Below are positions 1,822 to 64,000 of a stretch of DNA of 64,000 nucleotides, in pieces. This DNA is from Rhodosorus marinus CCMP1338 (lineage: Eukaryota; Plantae; Rhodophyta), in the NCBI GenBank assembly GCA_029953675.1, contig JAMWBK010000011.1, positions 496,001 through 560,000 of the forward strand, given 5' to 3'. Every line of letters begins with the position of its first letter. Position 1 is the stretch's first letter. A program made the position numbers and the translations under genes. The notes below the pieces were generated by a model that worked only from the letters and a program-made list of their open reading frames with translations, was not told where the DNA came from and made no database searches.

Positions 1822-2427
1822 TTAGCAGTTGCAGAAAGTCGCGGCTTCGTCCCTAGAGTTGAGGTTGGCCACGCTGAAGTTCGCGTTTTGTCTCGTGCAC
1901 AGGGACGGCGTATGAACCATCGCTTCTACGAGATCGAGAAATGTAGCATCCACTCCTATTGACTCCTTGGCACTCGATTCAATGTACAACGCCCCGATAT
2001 CCCTAGCAAGCAGCTGACCTTCCTCCTTCGTCACTCTCCTTGGCTTCAAGTCGATCTTGTTTCCCACCACTACCTTAATAATGTCCTCATAGGTACTATA
2101 TCTCGTCAGCTCGGCAATCCATTCTTCCTTTAGACTCTCAAACGATTCACGCCTCGTCACATCGTAAACGAACAGTACCCCATGCGCGCCCCGATAATAC
2201 GCACTCGTGAGCGTCCTGAACCTCTCCTGACCCGCGGTATCCCACAATGTGAGCTTCACCCTAAACCCACCTACGGTCACCTTCTTCGTTTGGAAGTCGA
2301 CGCCAATCGTCGGTGGTAGGTCCTCAAAAGTATCCTCCGTATACCTCAGCAGCAGCGAGCTCTTCCCAACGCCGCTTTCTCCCACCAGCAAGATCTTGAA
2401 CTGCTCGTCGTACTCCGATGCTGCCAT
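1822..2427 (-). CDS. RAB18: Rab18/RabC small GTPase, intronless, 201 aa
   Basis: GESGVGKS, PTIGVDF, WDTAGQERFRTLTSAYYRGA, GNKID and ESSAK motifs; C-terminal CxC prenylation signal (FCNC); LLLRYTEDTFEDLPPTIG is Rab18-like. Confidence 0.92.
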   Translation of the reverse strand: MAASEYDEQFKILLVGESGVGKSSLLLRYTEDTFEDLPPTIGVDFQTKKVTVGGFRVKLTLWDTAGQERFRTLTSAYYRGAHGVLFVYDVTRRESFESLKEEWIAELTRYSTYEDIIKVVVGNKIDLKPRRVTKEEGQLLARDIGALYIESSAKESIGVDATFLDLVEAMVHTPSLCTRQNANFSVANLNSRDEAATFCNC

Positions 2428-2726: not shown

Positions 2727-5700
2727 CTAAGCGCGGCGAAGTACTCGCGCCTCCAACATCAAAGCGGCATTCATGCGCCACAGCAGGAAACTTAAGCGGG
2801 TAAACAACGATTGAAGACGGTCAGGGCGTTCGCGGAACAACTCCCGAAGCCAGCGAGAACCAACAGAGTCCATGAACCCAAAGCACTCAATGATCAGGGG
2901 TACCAAGCGATGTGCTAGTGCCGAAGCACGAACACCAGGGGAAGACAAAGCCCCCGCGTATTTGATCTCTTTGCGGCGTCTCATGCTGGCGGCGGCAGAT
3001 CCACGGCGCTCCCCGCAGCCGGGAGATAACGACTAGCTTGAGGGTTGGGAACAGCAAGATCAACGTATGTGGTACGGCGGCTGTCGTCACAGGTTATCAC
3101 CAGGTCGGCTACACGGCGTTCATCATTTTGAAAGTCCGCGACGGGTAAAGGTTTCTCACGTTCGATTTCCAGACCGGCTTGCTGGACTATAGGCCGAAGT
3201 TCCCGGTATAACAGGTTCAAGATCCGTGTGTGGCGGCGGGTCCGAGCACCTTTCACCGCCGGGCAACTAGCGAGCAGGTGGGCGCCAAAATCTGCGTTGT
3301 CTTCAGTCTGAGAGCAGAGAGGGCACGACGAACCCATCTCGTACGGCCAAGGGGGCTGCTGTAAGCCGAGGTATAAGCGCAGTGAAGTACGCACTTCGAA
3401 ATCCGACAGTGTGAGTGGCGGAAAGGCTGGTACGGTCATGAGCCACTGAGAGCTAAGAACCCCTCCAAGACTACGTAGGCGGGCGCGAGCGCGAGAAGAT
3501 GAGACCATCTGCGCGAGGAGTCGGCCATATGCAGCACGGTGCAAGTCCCAAGAAAGGATATTTTGCAGCGCATCCGTGCGTGCTTGAGCTCGGCTCCCAG
3601 CGCGCTGGGAATCATCAGGAGGATCAACTGGAACTTCTTCTTCTGCGGCAACCACTGGGTCAATCTCCCCTAGAACAGGTTCAGGCGCAGGACGAATCCC
3701 CGGGGCGGAGCCTCGAGAGCGGTCAAATACAGCTCGCCAGTCAGGAAGACGGGGTTGAACGGTTTCGGGGAGACTAGTACAGGAGTTCAGGGCGGTTTGG
3801 AGCTCCAGAAACAAGTCTTGGGCGCTTTCCGGTACGCTGGGAAGCAAGACACCCCGCGAGAGGCTCGCCATCAAATTGCGGAACTTCGAGATACCCAAGC
3901 TGCTCAAAGTGGGAAGTGCGGTTCCCCAGGCCCCTACTGCGGCTGCAGGTTGGACCACAACACGATTGCAGAGGCCCAGTCCCCCCAATCGCAATGGGAG
4001 GCCTACCTGGGCGCGCACAACATCACAGGTGGGTCGCGGCAGAGCGCTCAGCTCTTCATCGAGAAAATACCCCAGGTCACGGAAACTTTCAGCATCCGCA
4101 CGAGTGGCCAACCACCGGCCCCAATGAGTTGGAAGTGAGCGAAGCCAATAGGTTAACCGCTGACTGCAACAATACCGAAACAGCAACAACGAGCACTGGA
4201 GAAAGCCCGGAGGTAGCCGTCGAAGCTCTGCAACCAGCTGTCTGTGCTTACCGAGGAGCTGCAGCAACTCGCCTTCAACGAAGGACGGCGACCCGTAGGG
4301 GATGCCTAAGTGGACAAAACCATCCGGTCTCCAAATATCCTGGAACGACGCAGGTACCTGCTGCTCTTGTGCAGCTACACCTCCCCAGTAGAACGATTTG
4401 TGATGATTAACCTCCAGGTCAACCCGCGAAGCCAAGGAGCGGAGACGATCATAAGCGAGCGCTAGAGTATCAGGGGGCCCCAGGAGGCACACGTCGTCGT
4501 GGTATGCAACCGTACGAACCTGCGGGAATTCGGAGCGAAGACAAAGCAAGACGAGTTGTAGTCCACAGGCATGTAGGAAAGGGGACAAGGGATCACCCTG
4601 TTGTACCCCTGTGCGCGCCGCAAACGTGTGTGAGGAAGCGCCAAGGGTGTCATAGGTAGCCCCACGACCAAGCGGAGAATAAAGTCTACTAACAAAGGGA
4701 AAGCCTACAGGGAAGACTTCGCGCACCACGTGCATGAGAGCCGGACGAGAGACGCGGTTGAACGCATTGGTAAAATCTACAGAGAGGAGCCCAGAATCTG
4801 GGGAGTACGCCATTTCCGAACGGAGTAAAACAGACAACAACTCACAGCCACCACGATAGCCCACGCCTAACTGCACGTGCCCAAAGAAACGGCGGGATTC
4901 GGGAACCAGGATTTTCACTAACCATCGCGCCGCCAATTTGCGGACCACCTCAACCAGGCCAATAGGGCGAATAGCAGGGCTCGAGGCCGTGTGGCTGGGC
5001 TTCGAAAGCAGACACAACTGCGAACGCCCGACCAAGAACCACGCACACTCACACAGGGGATCACCATTCACAAGCGCTTCGACCACCCACGCCAACGCCT
5101 TCAAACCTTCATCACTTAAGAAACGGAGATATTCCACCCGCAGCCCCGAGGGCCCTGGGGAACGGCCCTTCGGAGCATCATGAACCAACTCACGCACCGC
5201 CTCCAGATTGACCACTAACCGCGCACTGGGATGTGGCGCGGCGCGGTACTCTTCCAACACTGATTCAAACGAGGAGTCCCAAGGGGAGCCTTCCGAGGGA
5301 AAGAGCAAACGGAGCGGTGAAGAAAGATCATCGGAGTATGGAACCACAGGTTGCCGCTGCTGGAGGATCCCGGCTGCCCGCCGCAGATCACCGCCTGCCA
5401 CCGCGTGACGCGCCCGATTCTGTCGAGAAGACCTAAAAGCTGAGGAAGCACTAGGAGAAAAGGAAGAGAGAGAAGCGAAATAAAGACGTTCGAGGTCCTC
5501 AAAGTCGCCGGAAAGGAACATTTGCAGTTTTCGGCGAGGGTGGACCCGGCGAGGATGTGGGTTGAGGGGGACGGTAGAGGATGTGAGCACGAGGCGGGGA
5601 AAAAAGAACAAGAGTTCCCAGCGAAGAGAGCAGTGAGGGTTCGCGGCGACCTGCTGCCAGAGAAAATCCAACACCAATCCTAGGGGCTTATGAAGTCGAC

Positions 5701-5869
5701 GAGGGAGCCGTACGGCCGTGCTCTGACGACAAAGGGGAAGGGAACCGTCCGGGTAGGAGGCGATAAGGTGCGAAAACCACGAGAGAACACGCTCATGCCA
5801 GGCTGAGCGGTCACTGGTAAACAGGGGTAACCGGGACGACACGCACGCGGAGGAGGAAGACTCAGACAT
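2727..5869 (-). CDS. Retrotransposon ORF2 (RT-CCHC-RLE), ~1050 aa with one frameshift near 3010
   Basis: ORF 2981..6148 continues into ORF 2727..2984. The ATG at 5869 overlaps the ORF1 stop (ATGTCTGA). The homologous fragment at ~49.0 kb is in frame across the break and has one more base in the G/C run, which locates the frameshift. Confidence 0.85.
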
Positions 5870-7158
5870 CGGGCCTCCCCTCAGTCGGGAAGGCAGATCG
5901 AATATCCGGAGGAGGTGCCTCGGAGGGAGGCTCAGGAGCCGCACGACGCTTACGTGGAGGGCGCACGAAGGAACTAAAAGACCTGAAGAAAGTAGACACA
6001 GGGTTTTCAGCAGCGGAGTCTTGACTGAGGGTGTCCAGAGCCAGCGGATTGGGAGAGGCCGATGGTGCTTCTGCCATGTCGGTGTCACGAGCCTCGGAGA
6101 CAGGGCGAGGGGAGGAAGGGTGCTCAGGAGTCGGCGGCAGAAGGTCAAACGCAGGGTGGGCTTCCAGCAGGGTGGCCTCAGTGGAGAGGAAGGCCTCTAG
6201 CGCGGTGCGGAGGACCCCGCGAGGAGGAAAACGCGCGAAGAGGCTCGCCTGTATGCGCGAGAGCCGCGCCGCATGAGTGTGTAGCGCGACAACCGAAGCC
6301 TGCGAGGCATCCAGGTTTTGCAAGGCCGACGGTGGAACCCAGCCGGCGTCAAAACGATCGAACTCGACAAACAAAGAGACATGAGGACGAGTCAGTATCA
6401 TGTTGGCCAGAGCAGAGCGCTGGGGCGCGGGGGTGGTTACAAGGGATTGAAGGAACTGGTAAGCCGAGTCAGTAACAAGAAAACAGGCATGAGGGCCCGT
6501 GAAGTCCACATATAGGAATTCAGACGGGGCGACCCCAAGGAGGAAGCCATGGTGTCGCGAAAATCGCGGTAGTGGACGGGCGCGCGGCCCCGACCACGAG
6601 AGGGGGTCTGGGGACGCACGTTCGTCATCCAAACAAAGTGGAACGGAGATAGTTGGCGAGAAGAGTCAATAGGGATGTGTTGTGGCATCATACGCACCAT
6701 TGCCGTCGTGCGTTGTTCAGAAGAGCCCCTGCGTAGGACCTGCGAATAGGTCGCACGTGGGGCACTGGAGGGAGCAGGATTCGGGCCCGACGCGGGCCCA
6801 GGAGGCGTCTGTCCTTGAATAGGGGTAGGCCAGTCGGAATCAGGAATGACCGGAGCGGAGCGCTCGGGTCGGGTGGAGGCAGGCCCCGCTGTACCGTGCG
6901 GATCCGCGGGGACGGGCACCGGGGGTATGGGGCAGGCGCGGAGGCGGAGAAGCGCTCCAAATAGGCGATCAGCAGGGGCAGGCGGTGTTCCTGGGAAGCA
7001 GTCACAAGAAGACTCGTCAGTTTCGAGCAGATCCCATGGGCTAACTCGTCAGCGCAGTCCGTGAGGGTGCCCGCGGTACTAAACCCGCCCACGCGGAGCT
7101 CCACGCGCGCTGAGAGAACGGCTCCGTCCGCCGGAATGGGTGGGGAAACCCCAACCAT
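5862..7158 (-). CDS. Putative retrotransposon ORF1 (gag-like), split over three frames by two frameshifts
   Basis: Overlapping ORFs 6688..7272, 6437..6919 and 5862..6632 join into one Pro-rich protein containing TYSQVLRR. The stop overlaps the ORF2 ATG. No catalytic motif; start at ATG 7158 is tentative. Confidence 0.5.
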
Positions 7159-11932: not shown

Positions 11933-12004
11933 AGGGCCCACCCGGGATTGAACCGGGGACCTGTCGATCTGCAGTCGACCGCTCTACCACTGAGCTATAG
12001 ACCC
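11933..12004 (-). tRNA. tRNA-Cys (GCA)
   Basis: GGGTCTATAGCTCAGTGGTAGAGCGGTCGACTGCAGATCGACAGGTCCCCGGTTCAATCCCGGGTGGGCCCT: full cloverleaf, anticodon stem GTCGA/TCGAC, GTTCAAT T-loop, 72 nt. Confidence 0.96.
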
Positions 12005-42076: not shown

Positions 42077-42512
42077 TGATGCTCTATAGCTAGCTCACTG
42101 ATTAACCCTAAGACTTACTTCAAAATTTTTATGCAACTGACAACTAAATCTTACTAAAATGCAAAGTTCTCACCCTAAACCAATCATGTGTGCGTTTGAG
42201 TCCTTACACTCTTCAATAGCCGATTATATTACGAAACGCTTCATAGCGCTGTTTCATTGGTTAAAATGTGAAAGTTATCACCAATTATGTAATGAAATGG
42301 TTTGGATCGCGCGCGGAGTTGGCGAATAGACGTGGGTCGTTTTTGAAGTAATTTGGCGGAGGCTGACACCAGCATTTCCCGGCCAGTTTGAATGGGCAGA
42401 GCGGTTGGCGATGTCCCCGGCGAGAGAGACAATGCTTCCTGTTTCTAAGAAGAAAGTGTAACTGTCAGCGGGATGGTGAACGTGACCAGATAAGCACGAG
42501 AGTGTTCCACTG

Positions 42513-42979
42513 TCCCTCTAGTACAGATATTCGTTACTTGAGTTGGAGGAACGTCGGCCGCCTGCTCTGGAGAATGGAGAAAGGCTGTTGGTTGTTGGAA
42601 CATTGGAGAAATAGGTTTGTTGCTTACGGTCACGCAGCAGATCCATGAGGCTTTGCCCACGCCCGAGCGCCTCCTCTGAACGATGAAACGTATGGGCGTC
42701 TATCCGCCACACACCTAAGCGCTACGCGGGGCGGGACCCGGTCCGGGATCAGGCCGGGCGTCCCTCTAGTCGAGATATTCGTTACTTGAGTTGGAGGAAT
42801 GTCGGCCGCCTGCTCTGGAGAATGGAGAAATACGTTTGTTTCTTACGGTCACGCAGCAGATTCATGAGGCTTTGCTCAGGCCCGAGCGCCTCCTCTGAAC
42901 GATGAAACGTATAAGCGTCTATCCGCCACACACCTAAGCGCTACGCGGGGCGGGACGCCGTCCGGGATCAGGCCGGGCG
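42513..42979. repeat. Head-to-tail tandem duplication (248 bp + 219 bp)
   Basis: Both units run from TCCCTCTAGT to GATCAGGCCGGGCG; unit 2 lacks ~29 bp bounded by GGAGAAA microhomology. Confidence 0.9.
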
Positions 42980-45990: not shown

Positions 45991-46063
45991 GGTCTTATGG
46001 TGTAGTTGGTTAGCACGAGGGACTCTGAATCCCTAGACCCGAGTTCAAGTCTCGGTAGGACCT
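45991..46063 (+). tRNA. tRNA-Gln (CTG)
   Basis: GGTCTTATGGTGTAGTTGGTTAGCACGAGGGACTCTGAATCCCTAGACCCGAGTTCAAGTCTCGGTAGGACCT; anticodon stem AGGGA/TCCCT; TTTTT run just downstream. Confidence 0.96.
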
Positions 46064-46432: not shown

Positions 46433-48055
46433 TTAGGATGGTACGTAGTCATGTTCAGTGTCATGCAAGTCAAACTTTTTCAAAATCCTTTGCAAACGAT
46501 CCCGTTCATCTCGAAGTTCTTGTGGCACTCTTTCCCATTTCCAGATATTAGGGTAATTGTCCATCTCGCGATTCTCCTCTCGCACGTCGTACCACCTTTC
46601 CGCGGAATCCCTCATTACCTTTGAGCCTCTGATTAACTGGAAGTGACCCATTGGTCTTGTCTGATAAGAATAGTTATAGTCTCGCGTGTGCTTCTTGGCG
46701 TCCCCAAACAAGTATGGATACAAGCTTTGGCCATGGAGTTTGTATCCATCCAGAAGATGGCTCACGCCCATCAAATCGGCCAGCGTCGGTAAGAGGTCAA
46801 CGGAAGAAGCAAACTCATGCGACCTCCCTTGCTTTGTCATCTTGAGTCCGGGAGCATAAACGAACAATGGCACATGTGGACCCCTCTGCATTATTTCCAC
46901 AGCCTTTCCATAACCTTTCGTACCATTGTCTGTTGCAAAAATGATGACCGTATTATCCAGAACACCCAGCTTTTTGCACTTCTCCACAAGCTGCCAAAGC
47001 GTGTAGTCAAGATACTCGACATGGCGCCTAATTCCGCCGTTATTGATCCCGCTCGTTTTATAGCTTCCAGGCCTCCCCTTCACCACCGGCTTCGCCTTTA
47101 TGTACTTGTTCTTTTTCGAATCCCACCGTATCTTTGGTGTAGGTGGCCACGTATCAACTTTTTCATTCAGAAAGTCGAATGCCTTGTGTCCGAGTCTGGA
47201 GGTTGCATACAAGAAGAAAGGCTTGCCGTCCTCCTTGCACTTTCGCATGAACCTTTTCGTTACTGCCATATCTACGTCCGGGCCGAAGGTCCCCTTGTTG
47301 TATGTTTCCTTCGTCTTCGCCGTATTCGGGTAGTAGACTAGTTCCTCGTCCGCACCCGGAGCATTGAATAGAAGTATGTGTGGCAGCCAGGTAAAACTAC
47401 GATGAGCTCTTGCTCCTGCCGCTGACTTCCCCGTGTCCAAGTTGATCAATCTCTTGCTACCATTCTTGTTCTCTCCCCCCCCTACAATTTGAAAGTCTGA
47501 CAGAGGGCTAGGTGGAACCTCCTGTGGAGCGGGCACGAAAACGCCTTGATCAAACCCAAACTTCTCCAAATTATCAACGTCTTTCATGCCTGCTCTTCCT
47601 CCCCAAAGCGTCCCATACCCAGCAGCTGTTGCCAGCTGCCCAATTCCCAGAGGAGATGTGATCCAAAGAGGAACGATATCACCAATTTCTCCGTTCTCGT
47701 CCACCCACGATCCGTAGTCAAAATTGTGCCACCACTTTGTAATCGATGCGTACCTCCCAGTCATCATCATGGCACGGCTGGAGGCGCAGATCGGCGTAGA
47801 CCAATACCTGTCAAAAAATACACCCTTCTTCGCCATCTTATCCAGCATCGGCGTACGCGCTCGATACTTTTTCGAGCTTGTTGCCTCTTCATCGTCACTA
47901 GACCAAACCCCCGTATCATACGACGGGAACTCCCGAGGGCTCAGATCATCCCCAATTAAAATAATAATATTAGGCTTGCTCCCCTTGGATGCACCATCCA
48001 CGCCAGACAGAACAGCCCAGCACAGCACCACAAACAATCCCAAACCACCCCTCAT
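46433..48055 (-). CDS. Secreted S1-family sulfatase-like protein, copy 1 (intronless)
   Basis: Signal peptide MRGGLGLFVVLCWAVLSGVDG; PNIIILIGDDL; STPICASSRAMMMTGRY; FFLYATSRLGH; NTVIIFATDNG; GPHVPLFVYAPG; SSVDLLPTL. Confidence 0.9.
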   Translation of the reverse strand: MRGGLGLFVVLCWAVLSGVDGASKGSKPNIIILIGDDLSPREFPSYDTGVWSSDDEEATSSKKYRARTPMLDKMAKKGVFFDRYWSTPICASSRAMMMTGRYASITKWWHNFDYGSWVDENGEIGDIVPLWITSPLGIGQLATAAGYGTLWGGRAGMKDVDNLEKFGFDQGVFVPAPQEVPPSPLSDFQIVGGGENKNGSKRLINLDTGKSAAGARAHRSFTWLPHILLFNAPGADEELVYYPNTAKTKETYNKGTFGPDVDMAVTKRFMRKCKEDGKPFFLYATSRLGHKAFDFLNEKVDTWPPTPKIRWDSKKNKYIKAKPVVKGRPGSYKTSGINNGGIRRHVEYLDYTLWQLVEKCKKLGVLDNTVIIFATDNGTKGYGKAVEIMQRGPHVPLFVYAPGLKMTKQGRSHEFASSVDLLPTLADLMGVSHLLDGYKLHGQSLYPYLFGDAKKHTRDYNYSYQTRPMGHFQLIRGSKVMRDSAERWYDVREENREMDNYPNIWKWERVPQELRDERDRLQRILKKFDLHDTEHDYVPS

Positions 48056-48923
48056 CGCTACGCGTTCCACACAACCCCCACCCCCAACCAGGTCAAAACA
48101 AAACAAACACCTTGCCACCACCAACAGACGCTGCTAATAAATTCCCATCTTCCTCTCAACAACACTCCTGGTCAGCCAAATAAAATACTTGGCCCCCCCG
48201 CCCCCATCCTCTCGCCCACCCTCCCCACCCTCCCCACCCATCCCAAGCCAAAGATTGTTTCACCACATCTATATATATAAATCCATGTCCCACATCTGTC
48301 CCAAAACCCCTCCGGCATGTCCCAACACTCCTTTTCATCCTCCGCAGAACTCCATGATCACCCAAAACCCGTCGAAAACGATGCTTTTCACTCACACCAA
48401 AAATCGAAACACTAAATAAGTTTTCAAAAAACAATTTTCTAGTATGGGCACGCACCCTTCTACAATTCAGTCTCAATTGTTTTCCACGTCCCCGTTTCCA
48501 CCACCTGGAGGGACAGTTTTTTGTACTAAAGTTCATATACAAATTTTTTTTATAAGGGCAGGATAAGTGTTGCTCATATTTTCTCCAAAACCAAACGCTG
48601 CCTTTTTTTCTTTTTTTGGGGTAGGCTTCAAAAATGGCCAGGTAATCGAGGGAGAACGATGAAAAATGGGGTGGCGGGGGGGGGGGGTTGGAGAGGAAGA
48701 TTGGGCTTTAGAAATTATTGAAAAAGGATACGTGTATTGATGTATTCGAACTTTTTAAAATGGCAGGAATCGATGGTGGGGACTAAAGTAGAAAAACGAA
48801 TATAAATAGACGGAGGGGATAGATATTGGTATTTCCGCCAAAAATGTAGGGTTTTTGGAAACCTATTAAAAAGTGGCAGGAATCGAGGGGAAGTTGATGG
48901 GGAAGATTGGAGAGTTTGTCATA

Positions 48924-49313
48924 GGCACGGCTGGAGGCACAGATCGCCGTAGACCAATGCTTGTCGAGAATAATCCTCCGGCTAATCGTTATTCGCCAGC
49001 TGCGGGAGCGCCCCGTGGATTTGCCGCTGCCTGTATGATACGTCGCAAAGAGGTGAAACATGCTGGGGGCCATTGTCTTCCCCAGGCACTGATGCTGGGC
49101 TCTAGGTCATCGCCTGGTACCTCTGGTCATTGAGTGCTTTGGGTTCATGGATTCCATTGGTTCTCGTTGGCCTCCGGGAGTTGTTCCGCGATCGCCCTGA
49201 CCACATCTCCTAATTATTTACCGGCCTAAGTTTCCTGCTGTGCCGGATGAACGCTGCCTTGGACCCTTCTTCACTACCAGTTTATCCAGCATCGGCGTAT
49301 GCGCTCGATACTT
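48924..49313 (-). pseudogene. ~100-bp sulfatase remnant (active-site region) split by a retrotransposon fragment
   Basis: 48924-48972 matches GGCACGGCTGGAGGCGCAGATCGGCGTAGACCAAT of copy 1; 49262-49313 matches the immediately adjacent ACCCTTCTTC...TTATCCAGCATCGGCGTA.GCGCTCGATACTT. Confidence 0.85.
48972..49261 (+). mobile_element. Internal RLE-region fragment of the 2.7-7.4 kb retrotransposon family
   Basis: NPPANRYSPAAGAPRGFAAACMIRRKEVKH and CATTGAGTGCTTTGGGTTCATGGA...TAAGTTTCCTGCTGTG align with element 1 at ~2770-3050 (reverse complement). Confidence 0.88.
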
Positions 49314-51938: not shown

Positions 51939-53579
51939 TTACGGCAAGGATGGAACGTAGTCATGTTCAGTGTCGTAGACGTCAAACTCGTCCAAAACCG
52001 CTCTTAAACGCTTCAATTCATCTCGAGATTCTTGCGGCAGTGCTTGCCAGTCGAAAATGCGAGGGTAGTCGTCCATGTCGCGCTTTTCCTCCCGCACATC
52101 GTACCACCGGTTCGCGCCATCCTTCATAACATAGGAGCCTCTGATCAACTGGAAGTGACCCGCAAATCTTGTCATATAAGAAAAGTTGTACGTTCGTGTA
52201 TGCTTCTCGGCGTCCCCAAATAAGTAGGGATACAGGCTTTCACCATGGATTTCATATCCATCAAGAAGGTCACTCACGCCCATCAAATCGGCCACCGTTG
52301 GCAACAGGTCAACGGAAGAAGCAAGCTCGTGCGACCTGCCTTTCTTTGTCATACCTAGCCCAGGCGCGTAGACAAACAGTGGCACATGTGGACCCCTCTG
52401 CTTCCTCTCTACGGCTTTTCCGTAACCTTTTGTTCCGTTGTCTGTGGCGAAGATTATAACCGTATTGTTCAGGATGCCCAGCTCTTTGCATTTCTCTTCA
52501 AACTGCCACAGAGTGTAGTCTAGATACTCGACATGGCGCCTGATTCCGCCCTTATTGGTTCCGCTCGTCGTGTAGTTTCCAGCTTCCCCAGTTATCACCG
52601 ATTCTTGTTTCACATACCTCTGCGTTTTCGGATTCCACCATAGCTTCGGAGTAGGTGGCCACGTATCAACCTTCCCATTCAGAAAGTCGAATGCCTTGTG
52701 TCCAATTCTGGAGGTTGCATACAAGAAGAAAGGCTTATCGTCCTCCGTGCATGTCTCCATGAAGGCCTTGGTTACGTCCATATCCACGTCAGGCCCGAAT
52801 GTGCCCATGTTGTATGCTTCTCTAGTTTCCTCCGTATTGGGATAGTAGACTAGTCTACCATCTTGTTCCTCGTCCCCCTTTGGAGGATTGAACAGAAGTA
52901 CGTGGGGCAGCCAAGTGTAACTGCGATGAGCTCTTGCTCCTGGTTCTACCTTGCCGGTGTCCAAGTTGATCAATTTCTTGTTGCCATTCTCGTCCCTTCC
53001 CCTCCCTACGACTTGAAAATCTGACAGAGGGCTAGGTGGAACCTCTTGTGGAGCGGGCACGAAAACGCCTTGCCCAAACCCAAACTTCTCCAAATTATCA
53101 ACGTCTTTCATACCTGCTCTTCCCCCCCAAAACGTTCCATACCCAGCCGCCGTTGCCAGTTGCCCAATTCCCAGAGGAGATGTGATCCAAAGAGGAACGA
53201 TATCACCGATTTCTCCGTTCTCGTCCACCCACGATCCGTAGTCAAAATTGTGCCACCACTTGGTGATCGTTGCGTATCTTCCAGTCATCATCATTCCACG
53301 GCTGGAGGCGCAGATTGGTGTAGACCAATACCTGTCAAAAAAGACACCCTCCTTCGCCATCTTATCCATCATCGGCGTGCGCGCGCGATACTTGGGGCTG
53401 TCTGTCGTCTCTTCATCGGTACTGGACCAGACCCCGGTATCGTATGGTGGGAACTCCCGGGGGCTGAGATCATCCCCGATCAAAATGATAATATTAGGCT
53501 TGCTGCCAGCCGCTGCACTCTCCACACCGGACAGAACAGCCCAGCACAGCACCATAAACCATCCCAAACCACCCTTCAT
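51939..53579 (-). CDS. Secreted S1-family sulfatase-like protein, copy 2 (intronless)
   Basis: Same motifs as copy 1 (CASSRGMMMTGRY); intact ORF with signal peptide. Confidence 0.9.
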   Translation of the reverse strand: MKGGLGWFMVLCWAVLSGVESAAAGSKPNIIILIGDDLSPREFPPYDTGVWSSTDEETTDSPKYRARTPMMDKMAKEGVFFDRYWSTPICASSRGMMMTGRYATITKWWHNFDYGSWVDENGEIGDIVPLWITSPLGIGQLATAAGYGTFWGGRAGMKDVDNLEKFGFGQGVFVPAPQEVPPSPLSDFQVVGRGRDENGNKKLINLDTGKVEPGARAHRSYTWLPHVLLFNPPKGDEEQDGRLVYYPNTEETREAYNMGTFGPDVDMDVTKAFMETCTEDDKPFFLYATSRIGHKAFDFLNGKVDTWPPTPKLWWNPKTQRYVKQESVITGEAGNYTTSGTNKGGIRRHVEYLDYTLWQFEEKCKELGILNNTVIIFATDNGTKGYGKAVERKQRGPHVPLFVYAPGLGMTKKGRSHELASSVDLLPTVADLMGVSDLLDGYEIHGESLYPYLFGDAEKHTRTYNFSYMTRFAGHFQLIRGSYVMKDGANRWYDVREEKRDMDDYPRIFDWQALPQESRDELKRLRAVLDEFDVYDTEHDYVPSLP

Positions 53580-53861
53580 CGTGCCACACAATTAAGGATG
53601 ATCAGATCCTCAAAATCCACCTCACCAGCCCCCAAAAAAACAAAAGCGGTCCTCAAGCTCCTCACCCCAGCTTCTCTCTCAACCCTCCCCCGCCACACCT
53701 AGTCCCATACGACCTCTATATATACAACGTGCCAACTGATCAGGGCACGACACATTTCTTCCCTCCCCCCAAAAACATTTTTCAAAAACAAACTAAGAAA
53801 CACAGTGCCCGATTTTCCTCCATGTCATAATGATTGATTCTAATTCCCAAGGAATTTGATC

Positions 53862-56634: not shown

Positions 56635-56835
56635 CTAAACCTCGGGTTCTGGTACGTAGTCATGTTCAGTGTCACAAACCACAAGCGTATCCAAAACCGC
56701 TGTTAAACGATCCCGATCGGAGATCTTGCGGTACTTCGTCCCAGTTTGTGATTATAGGGCAGTTGGCCAAGTCCCGTTTTTCGTTCGACACGCCGCACCA
56801 TTGCTCCCCGCTATCCTGCACCACAGCCGCACCAG
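56635..56835 (-). pseudogene. C-terminal fragment of a further sulfatase copy
   Basis: VVQDSGEQWCGVSNEKRDLANCPIITNWDEVPQDLR, then after a frameshift CDTEHDYVPEPEV*; aligns with VMRDSAERWYDVREENREMDNYPNIWKWERVPQELR...HDTEHDYVP. Confidence 0.85.
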
Positions 56836-56992
56836 GCTCTAGACTCGAAGAAGACAAACAGCCCGAGGCAAGAGGGCAGTGAAGGGTCAGGTCTACAACG
56901 TGTTGTGGAGAACGTCTGCATCCTCCACGACAAGATCTGGGCTTCCGAATCATTGGTTCGGGTGCCGAGGCAATGGAGAGGCTCAAATCCTA

Positions 56993-57766
56993 TTGAGCCT
57001 CAGGTCGATTTGAAACCGGGCCAACTCCGGACGGTCCAAGAATGCCTCGAATTCGGGTAGCAAGTCCACGTCGGACGAGGGGAACAAAGATGACACCGTC
57101 TGGGCGAGACTTTCTGCATAGGGGAGGACAGGCGCCTGGCCCGCCAGAACTCGCGCCGCTCGACTCAAGTCCCACCGCTACCAATTTCTGTACTCGAGCC
57201 GTCAGGGGCGAGACGGTTCCAGCCCGGGTCCGACGAACGGATGGTTCCAACGACGCCAAGTAGCTTTGCTGCTACACCTCGAATTCCCCTTTCAGGAACA
57301 TGGCAAGCCGATCTCGGACACACCATCTGTGTGACACGCCATCTGTGTGACACGCCATCTGTGTGACACGCATTCTGTGTGACACGCCATCTGTGTGACA
57401 CGCCATCTGTGTACACCATCTGTGTGACACGCCATCTGTGTCCGAGATCGGTTTGCCATGTTCCTGAAAGGGGAATTCGAGGTGTAGCAGCAAAGCTACT
57501 TGGCGTCGTTGGAACCATCCGTTCGTCGGACCCGGGCTGGAACCGTCTCGCCCCTGACGGCTCGAGTACAGAAATTGGTAGCGGTGGGACTTGAGTCGAG
57601 CGGCGCGAGTTCTGGCGGGCCAGGCGCCTGTCCTCCCCTATGCAGAAAGTCTCGCCCAGACGGTGTCATCTTTGTTCCCCTCGTCCGACGTGGACTTGCT
57701 ACCCGAATTCGAGGCATTCTTGGACCGTCCGGAGTTGGCCCGGTTTCAAATCGACCTGAGTCTCAA
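56993..57766. repeat. 330-bp inverted repeat (56993-57322 / 57437-57766) around a tandem-repeat spacer
   Basis: Base-by-base comparison: the arms are reverse complements with only two mismatches (56998/57761 and 57307/57452). Confidence 0.95.
57317..57441 (+). repeat. Eight tandem units of GACACGCCATCTGTGT (16 bp; three variant units)
   Basis: Units parsed directly: 5 perfect, GACACACC..., GACACGCATT... and one 13-bp unit; no spacers. Confidence 0.95.
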
Positions 57767-60530
57767 CGAGTTTGATCTGGAGGATTTGCTTCGTACCTCG
57801 CGTCGTGGACGCTGTCCTGGACCCGCAGGGCTTCGAACCGAATTATTGCAGGCCTTGGGCAAGCCTGGCCGGAGCGCACTGCTCAAGATCCTGAACAAAC
57901 TGTTCCAGGGCACATCGGGTGCGTCTGCCCTATGGGAACATCTCCGAAGGGCACAACTTTGAATGCTCGCGAAGCCTGGCCATCAGCCGGCCCACCCGCG
58001 TCTCCGGCCGATCGGTATGGTCGAGAGCCTACGGAAACTAGGTGGAAGGTGGCTATGCCAGCGAATTCGCCAGCGGGTCACAGCTTTTGTGGCGCCCTTG
58101 CAAGTGGGGGTGGGATTTTCGGGGGGTTGCGAATTGATCACCCTTGGGATCGAGCTGGAGCGTGCCTGTAGGCCCGACTGGGGAGTTTTGGTGGTTGATT
58201 TTCGAAACGCATTCAACAGCGTCTCGCGGACGCATGCGTTGGAGGTGATCCGACGGGTTTCTCCGGAGGCGTGGCCCTGCCTCTCTGGTCTTTACGGAAG
58301 GGGGAGCCTCCCCTACTGCACCAGTGAGGGCACTGTTTTCCAAGCACATACTGGAGTCCAACACTGCCATCCTTGTGGGCCTCTGCTTCATGCGTGTGCC
58401 CTGCAGCTCGTTCTCCTGCGTCTCGCGACTGAGGTGCCGGCTCTTCGTATCTACGCCTATCACGACGACGTGACCTTGCTGGGCGCCCCTGAGACTCTGG
58501 CTCGGGGGTTGACCCAGATCGAAGCGATTGCACGTGGAGTAGGTCTGACGGTGGAACCCGAGAAGTGTCCCTAGGGGGAGCCTCCCCTACTGCACCAGGG
58601 AGTGCACTGTTTTCCAAGCACATACTGGAGTCCAACAAGGCCATCCTTGTGGGCGTCTACTTCCTGCGTGTGCCTTGCAGCTCGTTCTCCTGCGTCTCGC
58701 GACTGAGGTGCCGGCTCTTCGTATCTACGCCTATCACGACGACGTGACCTTGCTGGGCGCCCCTGAAACCCTGGCTCGGGGGTTGACCCAGATCGAAGCG
58801 ATTGCACGTGGAGTGGGTCTGACGGTGGAACCCGAAAAGAGTCGTTTTCTCGCTCCAAGTGAAGTTTCGATGGCCTCTCTGCCATCTAATCTACGAACCA
58901 TTGGCGAACGTGAAGGGTTGGAGCACCACAGCGTCGGTTTCGGGAGCAACAACTTTGTCCAAGCCTCTTGCGAACGAGTCTTGACTCGGCACAAGCAGCT
59001 CACTGACGCCATTGAGCGCCTTCCAGACAGTATGCTGCGATCGGCCCGCTTGCTTTCCCGCTTTTGTGCCAGTCCCCGACTCAACTACTGGTTGCGTAGC
59101 CTACCACCCGACTGGGGTTCGCCGCCAAGGCCGACGAGATGACGCTGAACCACTGGGGTACGCTCTTGGATGAACCCCTCGATCTTGAAGAGGCTCCCGA
59201 CAGGGACTTAATTCGTGCCCAGCTCGCCCTACCGTTGCGCTTGGGGGGATTTGGTGTCGCAGATCGGGGGCTCGTCTTCTCGCCTGCGGCGGTCGCCTCC
59301 TGGGCAACCGCGCTCCGTACCTGGGTGACTTTCCGGATACAAAGTGCCTGCTTTTTTGCTCGAGCACAGACTAGCGAGGACCCAGTGACCCTTTCGCCCC
59401 AGCTTTTGACGATCTATGATGGTCTACAACAGGCGTTCCGGATGTGCAACGCCGTGCCGGACGAGAATCGATCCCGTTTTCGCTCTTGGCGGGAACTGCT
59501 ATGGGGACGAACTGCGGCGATTGAGGACTCACCCATTGACAGAGTTCTTTCCGATGAGGGAGAAGCTAGCCCCGAGTCACCCGTTGCAGATTACCCAGGT
59601 CTGACCCGATTGTGGAGCTCCCGCACTGAAGTGATTCAACATAGCCTCAGCTGGGGCCAACACAGTGCCGCTCACGCAATCTTGCTCAACTCTCCCCTCA
59701 CACCGCCTACCACCGCCGCTCGCCTTCGCGGCATGGGAGGCCATCTCTCGCGCCTGTGGTTAACCACTCTGCCTTCGTCGCCGGGTCACCGCCTCGATGC
59801 CTTCCAGTTCCGCTCCGCCGCACGGATCTACTGAGGTTTGCCACAAGCCCCGTGGCACTCTAATCGGCCGTCTTTCTGTCAGGGATGTGAGAGCCGGATT
59901 GACGCTTGTGGCTACCACTTCTTGGGTTCATGCGGACTGTTGCGGGGTCTCCGCACGAGGCGCCACACTCGTCTCAAGTACACCCTAAGCGAATGTTTAG
60001 CTCGGGTAGGGCATACGGTTGAGGTGGAATCGGAACTACCCAGATCGGTCTCGGACACGGCGCCGCCCTGCTGTATCGCAGATCTTCTTGTATCAGACCC
60101 TGCCGCCCAGCGCTCAGCATATGTTGACGTCGCGATTACATGCCCTGTGGCGAGCGCCCACCTCACGGCTGCCGCCCGCCGCCGAGGGCCAGCCGCTTCG
60201 GCCCTTCGACGAGTGAAGGCACGACGGTATGCTGAGAGCATGGCCAGTCTGCCCTACGCAGAGGGTCGCTCCCACCGGTTCCAGCCTTTCATTGTGGAAA
60301 GCTTTGGTTATGTGGATAAGTCGGGTTTAGAGTGGTTGCGGAAATGTTTCGCGGAGCATCCTACTGAGTACTTGGCGTTTTTACCCGTTTGAGTGCCGTC
60401 CTGTGGCGATATTCTACCAGCATGCTTGCCGAGGCGCGCCATCGGCGCCTGGGTTTGCGCACTTCCCTCCCTAGTTCTTAGTTCCTTTTCACGTCTTGCG
60501 TAGCGCTTCAGGCTATGCTAGTGAAGCCCA
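57437..60530 (+). mobile_element. 5'-truncated, decayed CRE-like non-LTR retrotransposon (second subfamily)
   Basis: Frameshifted or stopped ORFs align with element 1 ORF2: RFAMFLKGEFE, GRCPGPAGLR, LRPIGMVESLRK, VDFRNAFNSVSR, AYHDDV, LPLRLGGFG, CQGC...HFLGSC, RTRRHTRL, IADL...VDVAIT, PFIVESFG, TRLSAVLWR. It ends where sulfatase 3'-flank homology begins (60531). Confidence 0.9.
58300..58839 (+). repeat. Internal ~265-bp tandem duplication of the RT core (58300-58564 / 58574-58839)
   Basis: Both copies start GGGGGAGCCTCCCC and end GAACCCGA.AAG; about a dozen differences; both encode AYHDDV. Confidence 0.9.
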
Positions 60531-60652
60531 GATAAAAGGCCAGCGGCGTGTGTGCAGATGCAAGGAGATCGATACGGTCTGTATTTTAATCTTGTACTAT
60601 TGCTTATAAGTATGAGTAGCTTCGCTGTGAAGGCAACGATGGGTCCTTTCCG

Positions 60653-62287
60653 TCACAGTGGAACGTAGTCATGTTCAGTGTCGTAGACGTCAAACTTGTC
60701 CAAAACCGGTCTTAAACGCTTCCATTCATCTCGAGATTTTTGGGGCAGTGTTTGCCAGTCGAAAATGCGAGGGTAGTCGTCCATGTCGCGCTTTTCCTCC
60801 CGTACATCGTACCAGTGTTTCAAGGCATCCCTCATAATATAGGAGCCTCTGATCATCTGGAAGTGACCCGCAAATCTTGTCATATAAGAAAAGTTGTACG
60901 TTCGTGTATGCTTCTCGGCGTCCCCAAATAAGTAGGGATAAAGGCTTTCACCATGGATTTCATATCCATCAAGAAGGTCACTCACGCCCATCAAATCGGC
61001 CACCGTTGGCAACAGGTCAACGGAAGAAGCGAACTCGCTGGACCTGCCTTTCTTCGTCATACCTAGCCCAGGCGCGTAGACGAACAGTGGCACATGTGGA
61101 CCCCTCTGCTTGATCCCTAGCCCCTTTCCATAACCCTTTGTTCCGTTGTCTGTGGCAAAGATTATAACCGTATTCTTCAGGATGCCCAGTTCTTTGCATT
61201 TCTCTTCAAACTGCCACAGAGTGTAGTCTAGATACTCGACATGGCGCCTGATTCCGCCCTTATTGGTTCCGCTCGTCGTGTAGTTTCCAGCTTCCCCAGT
61301 TATCACCGATTCTTGTTTCACATACCTCTGCGTTTTCGGATTCCACCATAGCTTCGGAGTAGGTGGCCACGTGTCAATCTTCCCATTCAGAAAGTCGAAT
61401 GCCTTGTGTCCAATTCTGGAGGTTGCATACAAGAAGAAAGGCTTATCGTCCTCCGTGCATGTCTCCATGAAGGCCTTGGTTACGTCCATATCCACGTCAG
61501 GCCCGAATGTGCCCTTGTTGTATGCTTCTCTAGTCTCCTCCGTATTGGGATAGTAGACTAGTCTACCATCTTGGTCCTCGTCCCCCTTTGGAGGATTGAA
61601 CAGAAGTACGTGGGGCAGCCAAGTGTAACTACGATGAGCTCTTGCTCCTGGTTCTACCTTGCCGGTGTCCAAGTTGATCAATCTCTTGTTACCATTCTTG
61701 TCCCTTCCCCGCGTTACAACTTGAAAATCTGACAGAGGGCTAGGTGGAACCTCTTGTGGAGCGGGCACGAAAACGCCTTGCCCAAACCCAAACTTTTCCA
61801 AATTGTCAACGTCTTTCATACCTGCTCTTCCCCCCCAAAACGTTCCATACCCAGCCGCCGTTGCCAGTTGCCCAATTCCCAGAGGAGATGTGATCCAAAG
61901 AGGAACGATATCACCGATTTCTCCGTTCTCGTCCACCCACGATCCGTAGTCAAAATTGTGCCACCACTTGGTGATCGATGCGTATCTTCCAGTCATCATC
62001 ATGCCACGACTGGAGGCGCAGATCGGCGTAGACCAGTATTTATCGAAAAAGACACCCTCCTTCGCCATCTTATCCAGCATCGGCGTGCGCGCGCGATACT
62101 TGGGTCTGTCTGTCGTCTCTTCATCGGTACTGGACCAGACCCCGGTATCGTACGGTGGGAACTCCCGGGGGCTGAGATCATCCCCGATCAAAATGATAAT
62201 ATTTGGCCTGCTGCCAGCCGCTGCACTATCCACACCGGACAGAACAGCCCAGCACACCACCACAAACCATACCAAACCAATCTTCAT
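60653..62287 (-). CDS. Secreted S1-family sulfatase-like protein, copy 3 (intronless; closest to copy 2)
   Basis: Intact ORF with signal peptide MKIGLVWFVVVCWAVLSG, CASSRGMMMTGRY and DNG. Confidence 0.9.
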   Translation of the reverse strand: MKIGLVWFVVVCWAVLSGVDSAAAGSRPNIIILIGDDLSPREFPPYDTGVWSSTDEETTDRPKYRARTPMLDKMAKEGVFFDKYWSTPICASSRGMMMTGRYASITKWWHNFDYGSWVDENGEIGDIVPLWITSPLGIGQLATAAGYGTFWGGRAGMKDVDNLEKFGFGQGVFVPAPQEVPPSPLSDFQVVTRGRDKNGNKRLINLDTGKVEPGARAHRSYTWLPHVLLFNPPKGDEDQDGRLVYYPNTEETREAYNKGTFGPDVDMDVTKAFMETCTEDDKPFFLYATSRIGHKAFDFLNGKIDTWPPTPKLWWNPKTQRYVKQESVITGEAGNYTTSGTNKGGIRRHVEYLDYTLWQFEEKCKELGILKNTVIIFATDNGTKGYGKGLGIKQRGPHVPLFVYAPGLGMTKKGRSSEFASSVDLLPTVADLMGVSDLLDGYEIHGESLYPYLFGDAEKHTRTYNFSYMTRFAGHFQMIRGSYIMRDALKHWYDVREEKRDMDDYPRIFDWQTLPQKSRDEWKRLRPVLDKFDVYDTEHDYVPL

Positions 62288-64000
62288 CGTGGCGTTCCAA
62301 ACACACAATCAACGACAATCATATCCTCAAAATCCACCTCACCAGCCCCCAAAAAAACAAAAGTGGTCCTCAAGTTCCTCACCCCACCTTCTCTCCCAAC
62401 CCTCCCCCGCCACACCTAGTCCCCGTATGATCTCTGTATATAGATAACGTATCAACTGATCAGTCACAACACATTTCCCATCAAAAATCAAAACAAAACC
62501 AAAAAGGAAACTGACTTTTCCTCCACGCCAAAATGTCGGATTCCGTAGGAATGGATCTCTCTCTCTCTCTCTACACAAAGATCCAAGTCGTTGCAACAAA
62601 CCCCTCAAAAATATCTAAAAAGCAAATAAGCCAACATTGCTACCGACAGTTACGCCACCGTCGGAGGTAAAAATACCGAAATGTGGATCTTCACAATCTC
62701 ACGAGTCCCCCCAAAAGAATATACAGTAATTCTTAAATACAACGGATCCTTGTCTCTCTAAACAAAACCTCTCAAAAATTTCCAAAAGTCAAGAACTACG
62801 TTGTCCACGAGCGGGTCTCTGTCCCCTCTTTCTCCTCCCCCCCGGGGGGGGGGAGTTAGAATATGGGGGTCCGTTTCCATCTCAAAAACCTAAAACTATG
62901 TAGTGTTTTTCTCACAGTTCACACCGGGACTAAATTTGGTTTGCTCTCTCCCCCCCGCCCAATCCTCGCCCTACCAAAAGAGTCTTTACAACGGTTTTCC
63001 GGTTTTGGATTTGTTTTATATATAAAATTGAAAATGTCGTGTGTGGACATGGTTTGTCAAATGTCTTGAGATATGATAGGGTTGTTGTTTTTATATAAAA
63101 AAGTTCACATGTCCACATGACCATCGTGTCATTTTTTGTGATTCAAGCTGTAGAAAGTGTTGGAAATCCATTGTTTTCTAGGCACTCATACTAGTTTAGG
63201 GATAATGGCTTTGATTAGAACCAAAAACTCCTATATCTAGTACCAACGTAGGGTATATCAAACTAGGGTTGTGCTGAAGAAAGAATTACCGCACTGGTGA
63301 TAACAATTACCAGCAAATAAGCCTGAAACTAAATACCGGGAATACGAGCTGGAATCGAGGATATTTAACAGTAGAAACTCCGATTCGGTAAGAACGGATT
63401 GTTTTACATATATAGAGAAAGCGGTGTTTTGCCGGTAATAAATCGTAATTGAATTCTTTTCTAGTGTAGCGGAATCGTGGGTTTCATCCTAATGAGAAAA
63501 ACGTTTGTTTTGCTACGGAATCGAGGGTTTGACACCTCGGTTTTGCCACCTCAAGTGGGGTTTCTCAATCCATCATCAATCCATCATCAATTACGCGATT
63601 CGGGGCTGGAATTGAGGGTACAAACCCGAGGGGGGTCGAATATCCAAGTACTGGAAGGATTGTGGAGAAACTCAACCAATATCGCAGCAATACCAGGCTG
63701 ATGCTGATACAGGTTTTATCGTTGCCCTTTTAACATTGAATAGTAAAAGAGGACGTAAACCTCGGAAACGACGATCAAAGCCGCCATATTAAATACAATA
63801 GAGTAGCGGATGAGGGACGCATTTCGTCCAGTATCATACGTTTCTCGGATGCTTGATCCCCGCCTGAGGGGAGTGGGCATGTCTCCACGAGATAAACAAC
63901 ATGTTTGCTTGGTCGCGGAGGATCTGTACCAAAAATCGAGCAAGCAGCAAGTGAAAGTTTCTGGAGAGAGAGGAGCTCCAGGAGAAGATCAGAATTCTTT

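Follow-up and report, generated by a model that had tools for sequence, protein, structure and literature searches.

Known 5'-junction aberrations and the Rhodosorus locus

In vitro, the 3' end of a complementary DNA (cDNA) made by a reverse transcriptase folds back on a few base pairs and primes its own second strand, a behaviour familiar from classical cDNA cloning. In human cells, insertion of transgenes by R2 proteins yields a "snap-back" class of 5' junctions, in which the 3' end of the cDNA uses the cDNA as its template for further synthesis and is only then joined to the upstream side, and such junctions leave antisense transgene sequence fused to the upstream target (PMC11371274, PMC11204384, PMC11331408). 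Here we describe a locus of the red alga Rhodosorus marinus CCMP1338, in a stretch of 64,000 nt (the window: positions 496,001 to 560,000 of the forward strand of contig JAMWBK010000011.1, assembly GCA_029953675.1), where a decayed, 5'-truncated long interspersed nuclear element (LINE), called element A below, is preceded by an inverted copy of its own first 330 nt, with an array of 16-nt repeats between the two. It looks like a natural case of a known class of LINE 5'-junction aberrations, found in an unusual host and at a single dead locus, and not like a new kind of thing.

In hairpin self-priming in vitro the hairpin becomes the second strand, whereas the R. marinus product had to be unfolded and copied, with both arms present on each strand. 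The R2 snap-back junctions (PRINT; PMC11371274, PMC11204384, PMC11331408) share with the algal locus an R2-type protein, antisense element sequence fused to the upstream target beside the sense 5' end and, on the reading that we favour, cDNA self-priming before the 5' junction is made; they too are often found on 5'-truncated products. They differ in being fresh insertions in human cells, whereas the algal copy is natural, old and germline-fixed, and in lying mostly within 100 bp of the nick, whereas the R. marinus target has lost about 4.3 kb. The algal copy also has a loop that consists of 16-mers, arrayed over 114 nt. In L1 twin priming, too, a truncated LINE has at its 5' end a segment in inverted orientation, attached by end-joining or microhomology, but that segment comes from another, more 5' part of the RNA and duplicates nothing; the R. 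marinus arm duplicates the adjacent sense 330 nt instead of replacing it, which excludes twin priming here.

More generally, target deletions and rearrangements are overrepresented among 5'-truncated L1 insertions, and self-annealing hairpins of L1 cDNA have also been described (PMC11702581). Fold-back inversions at resected ends, including L1-associated ones (PMC11702581), resemble our locus in that a 3' tail pairs with its own strand through a short inverted repeat, and also in the asymmetric spacer and the adjacent deletion; they are, however, usually chromosome-scale or dicentric, whereas the algal fold-back covers 330 bp, is interstitial and was rejoined to the same chromosome. Natural, fixed snap-back insertions are hardly described in the literature that we found, and the R. 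marinus case would add a distant lineage.

Anatomy of the palindrome

Pairing of base i with base 114759-i gave two inverted arms of 330 nt, 56993-57322 and 57437-57766, with exactly two mismatches (56998/57761 and 57307/57452), that is, an identity of 328/330; adding 496,000 to a window coordinate gives the position in JAMWBK010000011.1, so that the palindrome occupies record positions 552,993-553,766. These arm lengths and the two mismatches had been claimed in an earlier note made from the sequence alone, and the base-by-base pairing bears them out. An automatic repeat finder extended the arms to 345 nt at 97%, since it also counted partial matches in the quasi-palindromic array ends. The left arm (minus strand) is an inverted copy of element positions 57437-57766; the right arm (plus strand) holds the 330 nt with which the truncated element begins, in sense orientation, and five of these nucleotides, TGTGT, also belong to the last array unit. 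We confirmed in this way a genuine inverted duplication, or fold-back, of the first 330 nt of a 5'-truncated LINE of the R2 superfamily.

The 114 nt between the arms (57323-57436) are unpaired, and the centre of the palindrome is asymmetric, since all array units share one orientation. At the border between arm and array ACACA (57318-57322) pairs with TGTGT (57437-57441), which provides a microhomology at the pivot. The left, inverted arm retains the base of related elements at both arm differences and the right, sense arm is derived, so at least two substitutions have occurred since the palindrome was formed, both in the right arm. No Rfam family was found within or near the palindrome. Just outside the arm ends there is a patch in the same register with 7/8 complementary bases (56966-56973 versus 57786-57793), and near the left junction a TCAAA/TTTGA match displaced by 1 nt (56981-56992 versus 57767-57778); these patches could be due to chance, or could be traces of a longer arm or of junction microhomology.

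Truncation point and relatives of element A

The truncation point was located by comparison with three relatives, namely the JGI transcript L001, which encodes the protein P0002, and the Logan assemblies L002 and L003; all three are short contigs that stem from other samples. Their nucleotide identity to element A is about 77%. Homology to the relatives stops exactly at 57441/57442, the right edge of the array, which corresponds to residue 99 of P0002, while L001 and L003 continue upstream of the equivalent of 57442, encoding ...Arg-Arg-Trp-Arg-(Ile/Val)... with no significant similarity to the array. A 5'-truncated retroelement with its truncation point at the array edge, as the earlier note had it, is therefore what the relatives indicate. 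At the other end, the 3' tail of element A aligns with that of L001 to about 60518. A protein-profile scan of JGI metagenome contigs revealed no relative.

The conserved 3'-terminal 20-mer of element A, GTAGCGCTTCAGGCTATGCT (60500-60519, plus strand), is 100% identical to the first 20 nt of L001 (positions 1-20), the rest of which is about 77% identical to the element. The end of L001, positions 1114-1186, has the same 3' tail as 60446-60519 of the window, and inside L001 the reverse-transcriptase motif ...DFRNA is joined directly to the 3' tail. By these features L001 looks like a head-to-tail arrangement or template jump and an internally deleted copy, and the 3' end looks strongly conserved.

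Identity and lesions of element A

Element A (57442-60530, plus strand) has a single, interrupted reading frame extending from 57442 to about 60390, which encodes a reverse transcriptase (RVT_1 at 1.1e-9, 57963-58574) and, by its motifs, a putative C-terminal CCHC/restriction-like endonuclease region of the PD-(D/E)XK type, with an amino acid identity of 75-77% to P0001 and P0002. Its C-terminus had only two matches in PDB, both to R2 proteins at the position of the restriction-like endonuclease, with weak E-values (0.65-0.71). A second LINE of the same clade, element B, lies at 2823 to about 6900 on the minus strand; it is nearly intact, has 38% amino acid identity to the family of element A and contains an open reading frame (ORF) of 1055 amino acids (2981-6148, minus strand) with a reverse transcriptase and an R2-like endonuclease, as well as further ORFs upstream (5862-6632). 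In PDB, element B matched R2 proteins best (1.5e-12), followed by L1 ORF2p (about 1e-8), and a second stretch matched R2 residues 949-983; element B could still be active. The columns CxxC..H, RRH (R..RH), ADL and VDV are conserved across element A, element B and P0003. Pfam identified no domain besides RVT_1 in the 1055-residue ORF of element B and in P0003, so there is no N-terminal apurinic-like endonuclease, and no direct terminal repeats (long terminal repeats, LTRs) flank element A.

By these sequence features element A is assigned to the non-LTR retrotransposons of the R2 superfamily, the type with a restriction-like endonuclease. We also considered a Penelope-like element with an inverted partial copy at its 5' end and rejected it: there was no GIY-YIG match, the C-terminus is of the CCHC and restriction-like type, and R2 proteins are the nearest structural relatives. 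Element A, element B and a LINE fragment (about 49.0-49.3 kb) have different 3' flanks, and their surroundings, whether intergenic or pseudogene, are unrelated; the family is thus R2-like in protein but is not a member of R2 proper, as it lacks the site specificity that R2 shows for 28S rDNA.

Judging from its reading frame, element A is dead. Two of its inactivating lesions are located in the palindrome and are present in both arms: an in-frame TAG at 57485-57487 (TTG in L001), mirrored as CTA at 57272-57274, and a frameshifting deletion of 2 nt at 57587-57588 relative to L001 and L003, mirrored at 57171/57172. The earlier note had listed the stop codon and a frameshift near 57590 as common to both arms; the TAG is indeed in frame, and the frameshift is this 2-nt deletion after 57587. 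Further lesions, all read on the plus strand, are an in-frame TGA (57960-57962), a deletion of 7 nt at 59115-59116 relative to L002, which shifts the frame, and an in-frame stop just upstream of the endonuclease domain (59832-59834). In addition, the reverse-transcriptase core contains a frame-shifting tandem duplication of 274 bp (58299-58846) with a 3-nt CCT filler and no microhomology at the junction. The duplicate copies, 58299-58569 and 58573-58843, differ at 13/271 positions; L002 has one copy of the segment, and both copies in element A bear derived substitutions relative to L002.

Flanks and missing target DNA

At least six sulfatase genes follow one another in tandem here, 4.7-5.5 kb apart, and element A sits among them. 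Left of the palindrome there is, besides the region downstream of the gene, only a heavily decayed sulfatase remnant ("unit 3"; 56650-56833, minus strand) consisting of the last 63 codons or so, which was identified by tblastn with sulfatase copy 4 (amino acids 488-526 and 531-550) and has 69% nucleotide identity to the sulfatase copies at 46439, 51951 and 60659; no homology was detectable in 56834-56992. On the right, homology with the sulfatase units resumes at about 60531, in the region downstream of copy 4 (60531-60658), while about 55 nt that precede the equivalent of 60531 in units 2 and 3 are missing. Excision of 56993-60530 leaves about 471 bp of unit 3, compared with 4.7-5.5 kb in full units; hence the target has lost about 4.3 kb, directly beside the inverted arm. 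This loss beside the left arm was not part of the earlier note's account.

No target-site duplication was found at element A. A large one is ruled out, since identity between copy 4 and the sulfatase fragment to the left of the element reaches only 75-82%, and 3' transduction as the source of the flank homology at the element end was dropped, because unit 2 lacks the element at the corresponding place.

Origin of the palindrome

Read in the direction of synthesis, the minus strand runs from the complement of the element through the complement of the array to the first 330 nt of the element in sense orientation, and this order is the product expected of a snap-back with re-annealing of TGTGT and ACACA and self-extension. 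We favour the explanation, to which we give a probability of about 0.5, that the fold-back was made during insertion itself, by snap-back of the minus-strand cDNA via ACAC/GTGT microhomology in target-primed reverse transcription and subsequent joining to a resected upstream end, with arms that have since been homogenised or with a template that was defective. Target-primed reverse transcription would begin at the right junction, near 60530, and minus-strand cDNA would be copied leftwards to the position of 57442, where about 114 nt of 16-nt repeats would be appended by filler synthesis, from an extra template or by later expansion. The 3'-terminal ...TGTGT would then anneal to ACACA in the cDNA's own ...CTCGGACACA, the array being looped out, and would be extended by 330 nt on the cDNA template; that 3' end would be joined to an upstream chromosome end short of about 4.3 kb of the neighbouring sulfatase unit, and top-strand synthesis would fix the palindrome. 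The internal 274-bp duplication with its 3-nt filler may be a template switch of the same reverse-transcription run.

Several observations agree with formation at insertion. The inverted arm duplicates the adjacent sense sequence, with 5-nt complementarity at the pivot; the 3' end is intact and matches the 3' end of the relatives, which target-primed reverse transcription demands; every LINE insertion has to pass through a free 3' end of the cDNA, and the enzymology is known; and two aberrations typical of reverse transcription, the fold-back and the duplication with the CCT filler, occur in one copy. The suggestion of the earlier note that a DNA 3' end snapped back and copied 330 nt of itself is well founded in this respect, the structure being a true fold-back with a precedent in R2 and not a twin-priming inversion.

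Three points weigh against formation at insertion. A 4.3-kb target deletion is atypical of R2 proteins, the 5' junctions of which are mostly within 100 bp of the nick (PMC11371274). The divergence clocks disagree: the arms differ by 0.6%, the internal 274-bp duplicates by 4.8% and the array units by about 2.7%, and if arms (2/330) and duplicates (13/271) were equally old and diverged freely, the probability of at most two differences between the arms would be about 1e-5. The two inactivating lesions present in both arms, finally, call for conversion or a defective template as an added assumption. Together, the near-identity of the arms and the common TAG and 2-nt deletion mean that a fold-back made at insertion needs either arm-to-arm gene conversion, by which the lesions too would have passed from one arm to the other, or an RNA template that was already defective. 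In primate Y-chromosome palindromes arm-to-arm gene conversion keeps the arms closer in sequence than would be expected from their age, with divergence of the spacer; the R. marinus arms differ from these in being only 330 bp long, and conversion between them would have to be assumed. The array units deviate from their consensus at 3/112 positions and by one 3-nt deletion, so that the array is more diverged than the arms (3/112 versus 2/660, Fisher p = 0.024). As the array divergence is close to the approximately 2.4% per duplicate copy, the data are consistent with all three aberrations stemming from one event, after which only the arms were homogenised. The earlier note, which had pointed out that the arms are far more alike than the duplicates in the reverse-transcriptase core, had left the choice between a later event, a defective template and homogenisation, and given the common lesions and the similarity of the arms this caution was correct.

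A later event could have been a fold-back at the DNA level: after a break or fork collapse in or beside the already decayed element, a resected minus-strand 3' tail would fold at ACAC/GTGT of a pre-existing array, a host polymerase would extend it by 330 nt and a distant upstream end would be joined, so that a single event would delete the 5' part of the element and about 4.3 kb of the sulfatase unit. This would explain the common TAG and 2-nt deletion without extra assumptions, as well as arms that are about eight times more alike than the 274-bp duplicates; it would fit an array that is older than the palindrome and more diverged than the arms, and a kilobase-scale deletion directly beside the inverted arm, and self-annealing of resected 3' ends is an established class of rearrangements (PMC11702581). 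The expected anatomy, an asymmetric 114-nt spacer with an ACACA/TGTGT border and an adjacent deletion, is present, but it does not separate this class from snap-back at insertion. However, the 16-mer array would have to be there beforehand, and the three relatives lack an array at that position; furthermore, a rare rearrangement would have to strike this very element, whereas a cDNA 3' end is obligatory in LINE insertion. End-joining polymerases, moreover, rarely make interstitial inverted templated insertions of 330 nt. On balance we regard a fold-back after insertion as possible but rather unlikely.

Two other explanations would dispense with a fold-back of element DNA in the cell or with a common origin of the arms. 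An artefact could have arisen from a fold-back chimeric nanopore read, or short-read polishing could have made the arms falsely alike, for nanopore reads do yield palindromic chimeras and multi-mapping short reads could blur small differences between arms. Oxford Nanopore reads were assembled with NextDenovo, and three rounds of Pilon polishing with 100-bp Illumina pairs followed (PMC10250338); since the reads come from native, unamplified DNA, the amplification chimera that the earlier note had named as an alternative is unlikely. The palindrome is, besides, interior to a 1.44-Mb contig, and the flanks to its left and right are coherent; its centre is occupied by direct repeats, an asymmetric array of 114 nt, instead of a simple inversion point; and the arms still differ at two positions, at both of which the left arm holds the base of the relatives, as expected of real mutation. 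An artefact of sequencing or assembly is thus very improbable. Even harder to credit is a pair of independent head-to-head insertions of one family, the left of which would later have lost most of its length. The window does hold several LINE insertions of this clade in both orientations, but both copies would need truncation at the same nucleotide, where no difference is seen, as well as the same private TAG and 2-nt deletion and 99.4% identity, and the left arm lacks the 3' end that a target-primed insertion must keep.

If the fold-back was made at insertion, the locus points to self-priming of the cDNA as a general way in which the second half of LINE integration goes wrong, one that may be accompanied by the loss of kilobases of target DNA. 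It also offers a compact system for the persistence of short palindromes, through spacer growth and arm conversion. We saw no sign of a function of the palindrome at this single decayed locus; transcription of the entire region, if it occurs, could yield an RNA in which the arms pair as a 330-bp hairpin.

The 16-nt array

The array between the arms is a minisatellite of about eight units of GACACGCCATCTGTGT (57317-57441, plus strand; TRF: period 16, 8.0 copies). Five units are exact, one has one substitution (57317), one has two changes (57365) and one is only 13 nt long (57413-57425); the eight copies counted in the earlier note are thus found if variants are included, but exact copies number five. 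The note's description of the repeats as hairpin units needs a similar correction. The last unit plus the following C (57426-57442) does read GACAC-GCCATCT-GTGTC, but its folding as DNA is weak (-2.8 kcal/mol on the plus strand and -2.3 kcal/mol on the minus strand), and the whole array is no more structured than shuffled sequences (z -0.5 and +1.3), so that the term overstates the case. The relevant feature of each unit is its inverted repeat of 4-5 nt and not the strength of a hairpin.

With up to three mismatches, GACACGCCATCTGTGT had seven matches inside the array and one elsewhere in the 64 kb, where 0.49 are expected by chance. The array is absent from L001-L003 and from 8.3 kb beyond the window, an exact 27-mer of it had zero matches in JGI metagenome contigs, and an exact-protein look-up of the 117-residue ORF spanning it gave no match. 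Two possible sources within the element were considered. By eye, TGTACACCA of the array resembles TGCACACCA of L001 (Cys-Thr-Pro) in the same frame, but formal alignments did not support a native origin: for the 45 nt upstream of the boundary, semi-global alignment gave p = 0.83 for the array versus L001 and p = 0.96 versus L003, compared with p = 0.003 for L001 versus L003, and local alignment of the array with the upstream sequence of the relatives gave p = 0.13 and 0.41. By these comparisons the 16-mer is not demonstrably native to the element, and the resemblance is a lead at most. Likewise, the inner end of the inverted arm, GGCAAGCCGATCTCG, agrees with GACACGCCATCTGTGT at 10-11/16 positions, roughly in phase, but 5.9% of random 20-nt windows do equally well, which is not significant.

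The earlier note had proposed that the mini-hairpin was recopied by telomerase-like slippage. In such a scheme, the reverse transcriptase of the element, having run off the RNA, would go on adding copies of a short, self-complementary unit to the free 3' end of the cDNA, and the microhomology for the snap-back would come from this unit. Telomerase and Penelope-like reiterative copying also repeat a short unit head to tail at a DNA 3' end; the R. marinus element, by contrast, has no internal template RNA or slipping register, and its endonuclease is restriction-like and not GIY-YIG. De novo synthesis would fit the position of the array exactly between the RNA-templated cDNA and the snap-back product and its absence from the other sequences searched, and R2-type enzymes are known to add non-templated nucleotides and to jump between templates (PMC11331408, PMC11371274). 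If true, it would amount to a repeat-adding activity of a LINE reverse transcriptase in vivo at a 5' junction. However, there is no slipping register, because the native RNA, 16 nt downstream, offers no Watson-Crick pairing to the cDNA end GTGTC; a self-primed mini-hairpin would be expected to give an inverted arm directly and not direct repeats; the mini-hairpin is marginal and the array unstructured; and the unit variants, including that of 13 nt, are typical of ordinary minisatellites. De novo synthesis of the array is accordingly improbable, and slippage on the mini-hairpin is left without support. The remaining candidates are ordinary minisatellite expansion by replication slippage at the palindrome centre and filler synthesis or copying of an extra template at the junction. 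Growth of the spacer would also stabilise the palindrome.

Other features of the window

The sulfatase copies of the window lie at 46439-48073, 51951-53591, 56650-56833 (the remnant) and 60656-62308, with more beyond the window (L004), and are intronless. Their nearest relatives outside Rhodosorus are bacterial (Bacteroidota, Planctomycetota and Verrucomicrobiota; 40-43% identity), and an exact-protein look-up of the neighbouring sulfatase returned the same assembly only. These similarities suggest that the array is an expanded gene family of bacterial origin. At 48924-49260 there is a second spot where a LINE fragment meets a broken sulfatase copy: a 5'-truncated 3' fragment of the element B family (about 48990-49260, plus strand) abuts the relic of a sulfatase N-terminus (48924-49088, minus strand; amino acids 40-102 at 32%).

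Rfam identified two transfer RNA genes, at 11933-12004 (minus strand) and 45991-46063 (plus strand), with 66 bits each. Tandem repeats with a period of about 219-248 bp and 89-94% identity occupy 42512-42979, and an intronless gene for a Rab-type small GTPase of 201 amino acids (1822-2427, minus strand) adjoins element B.

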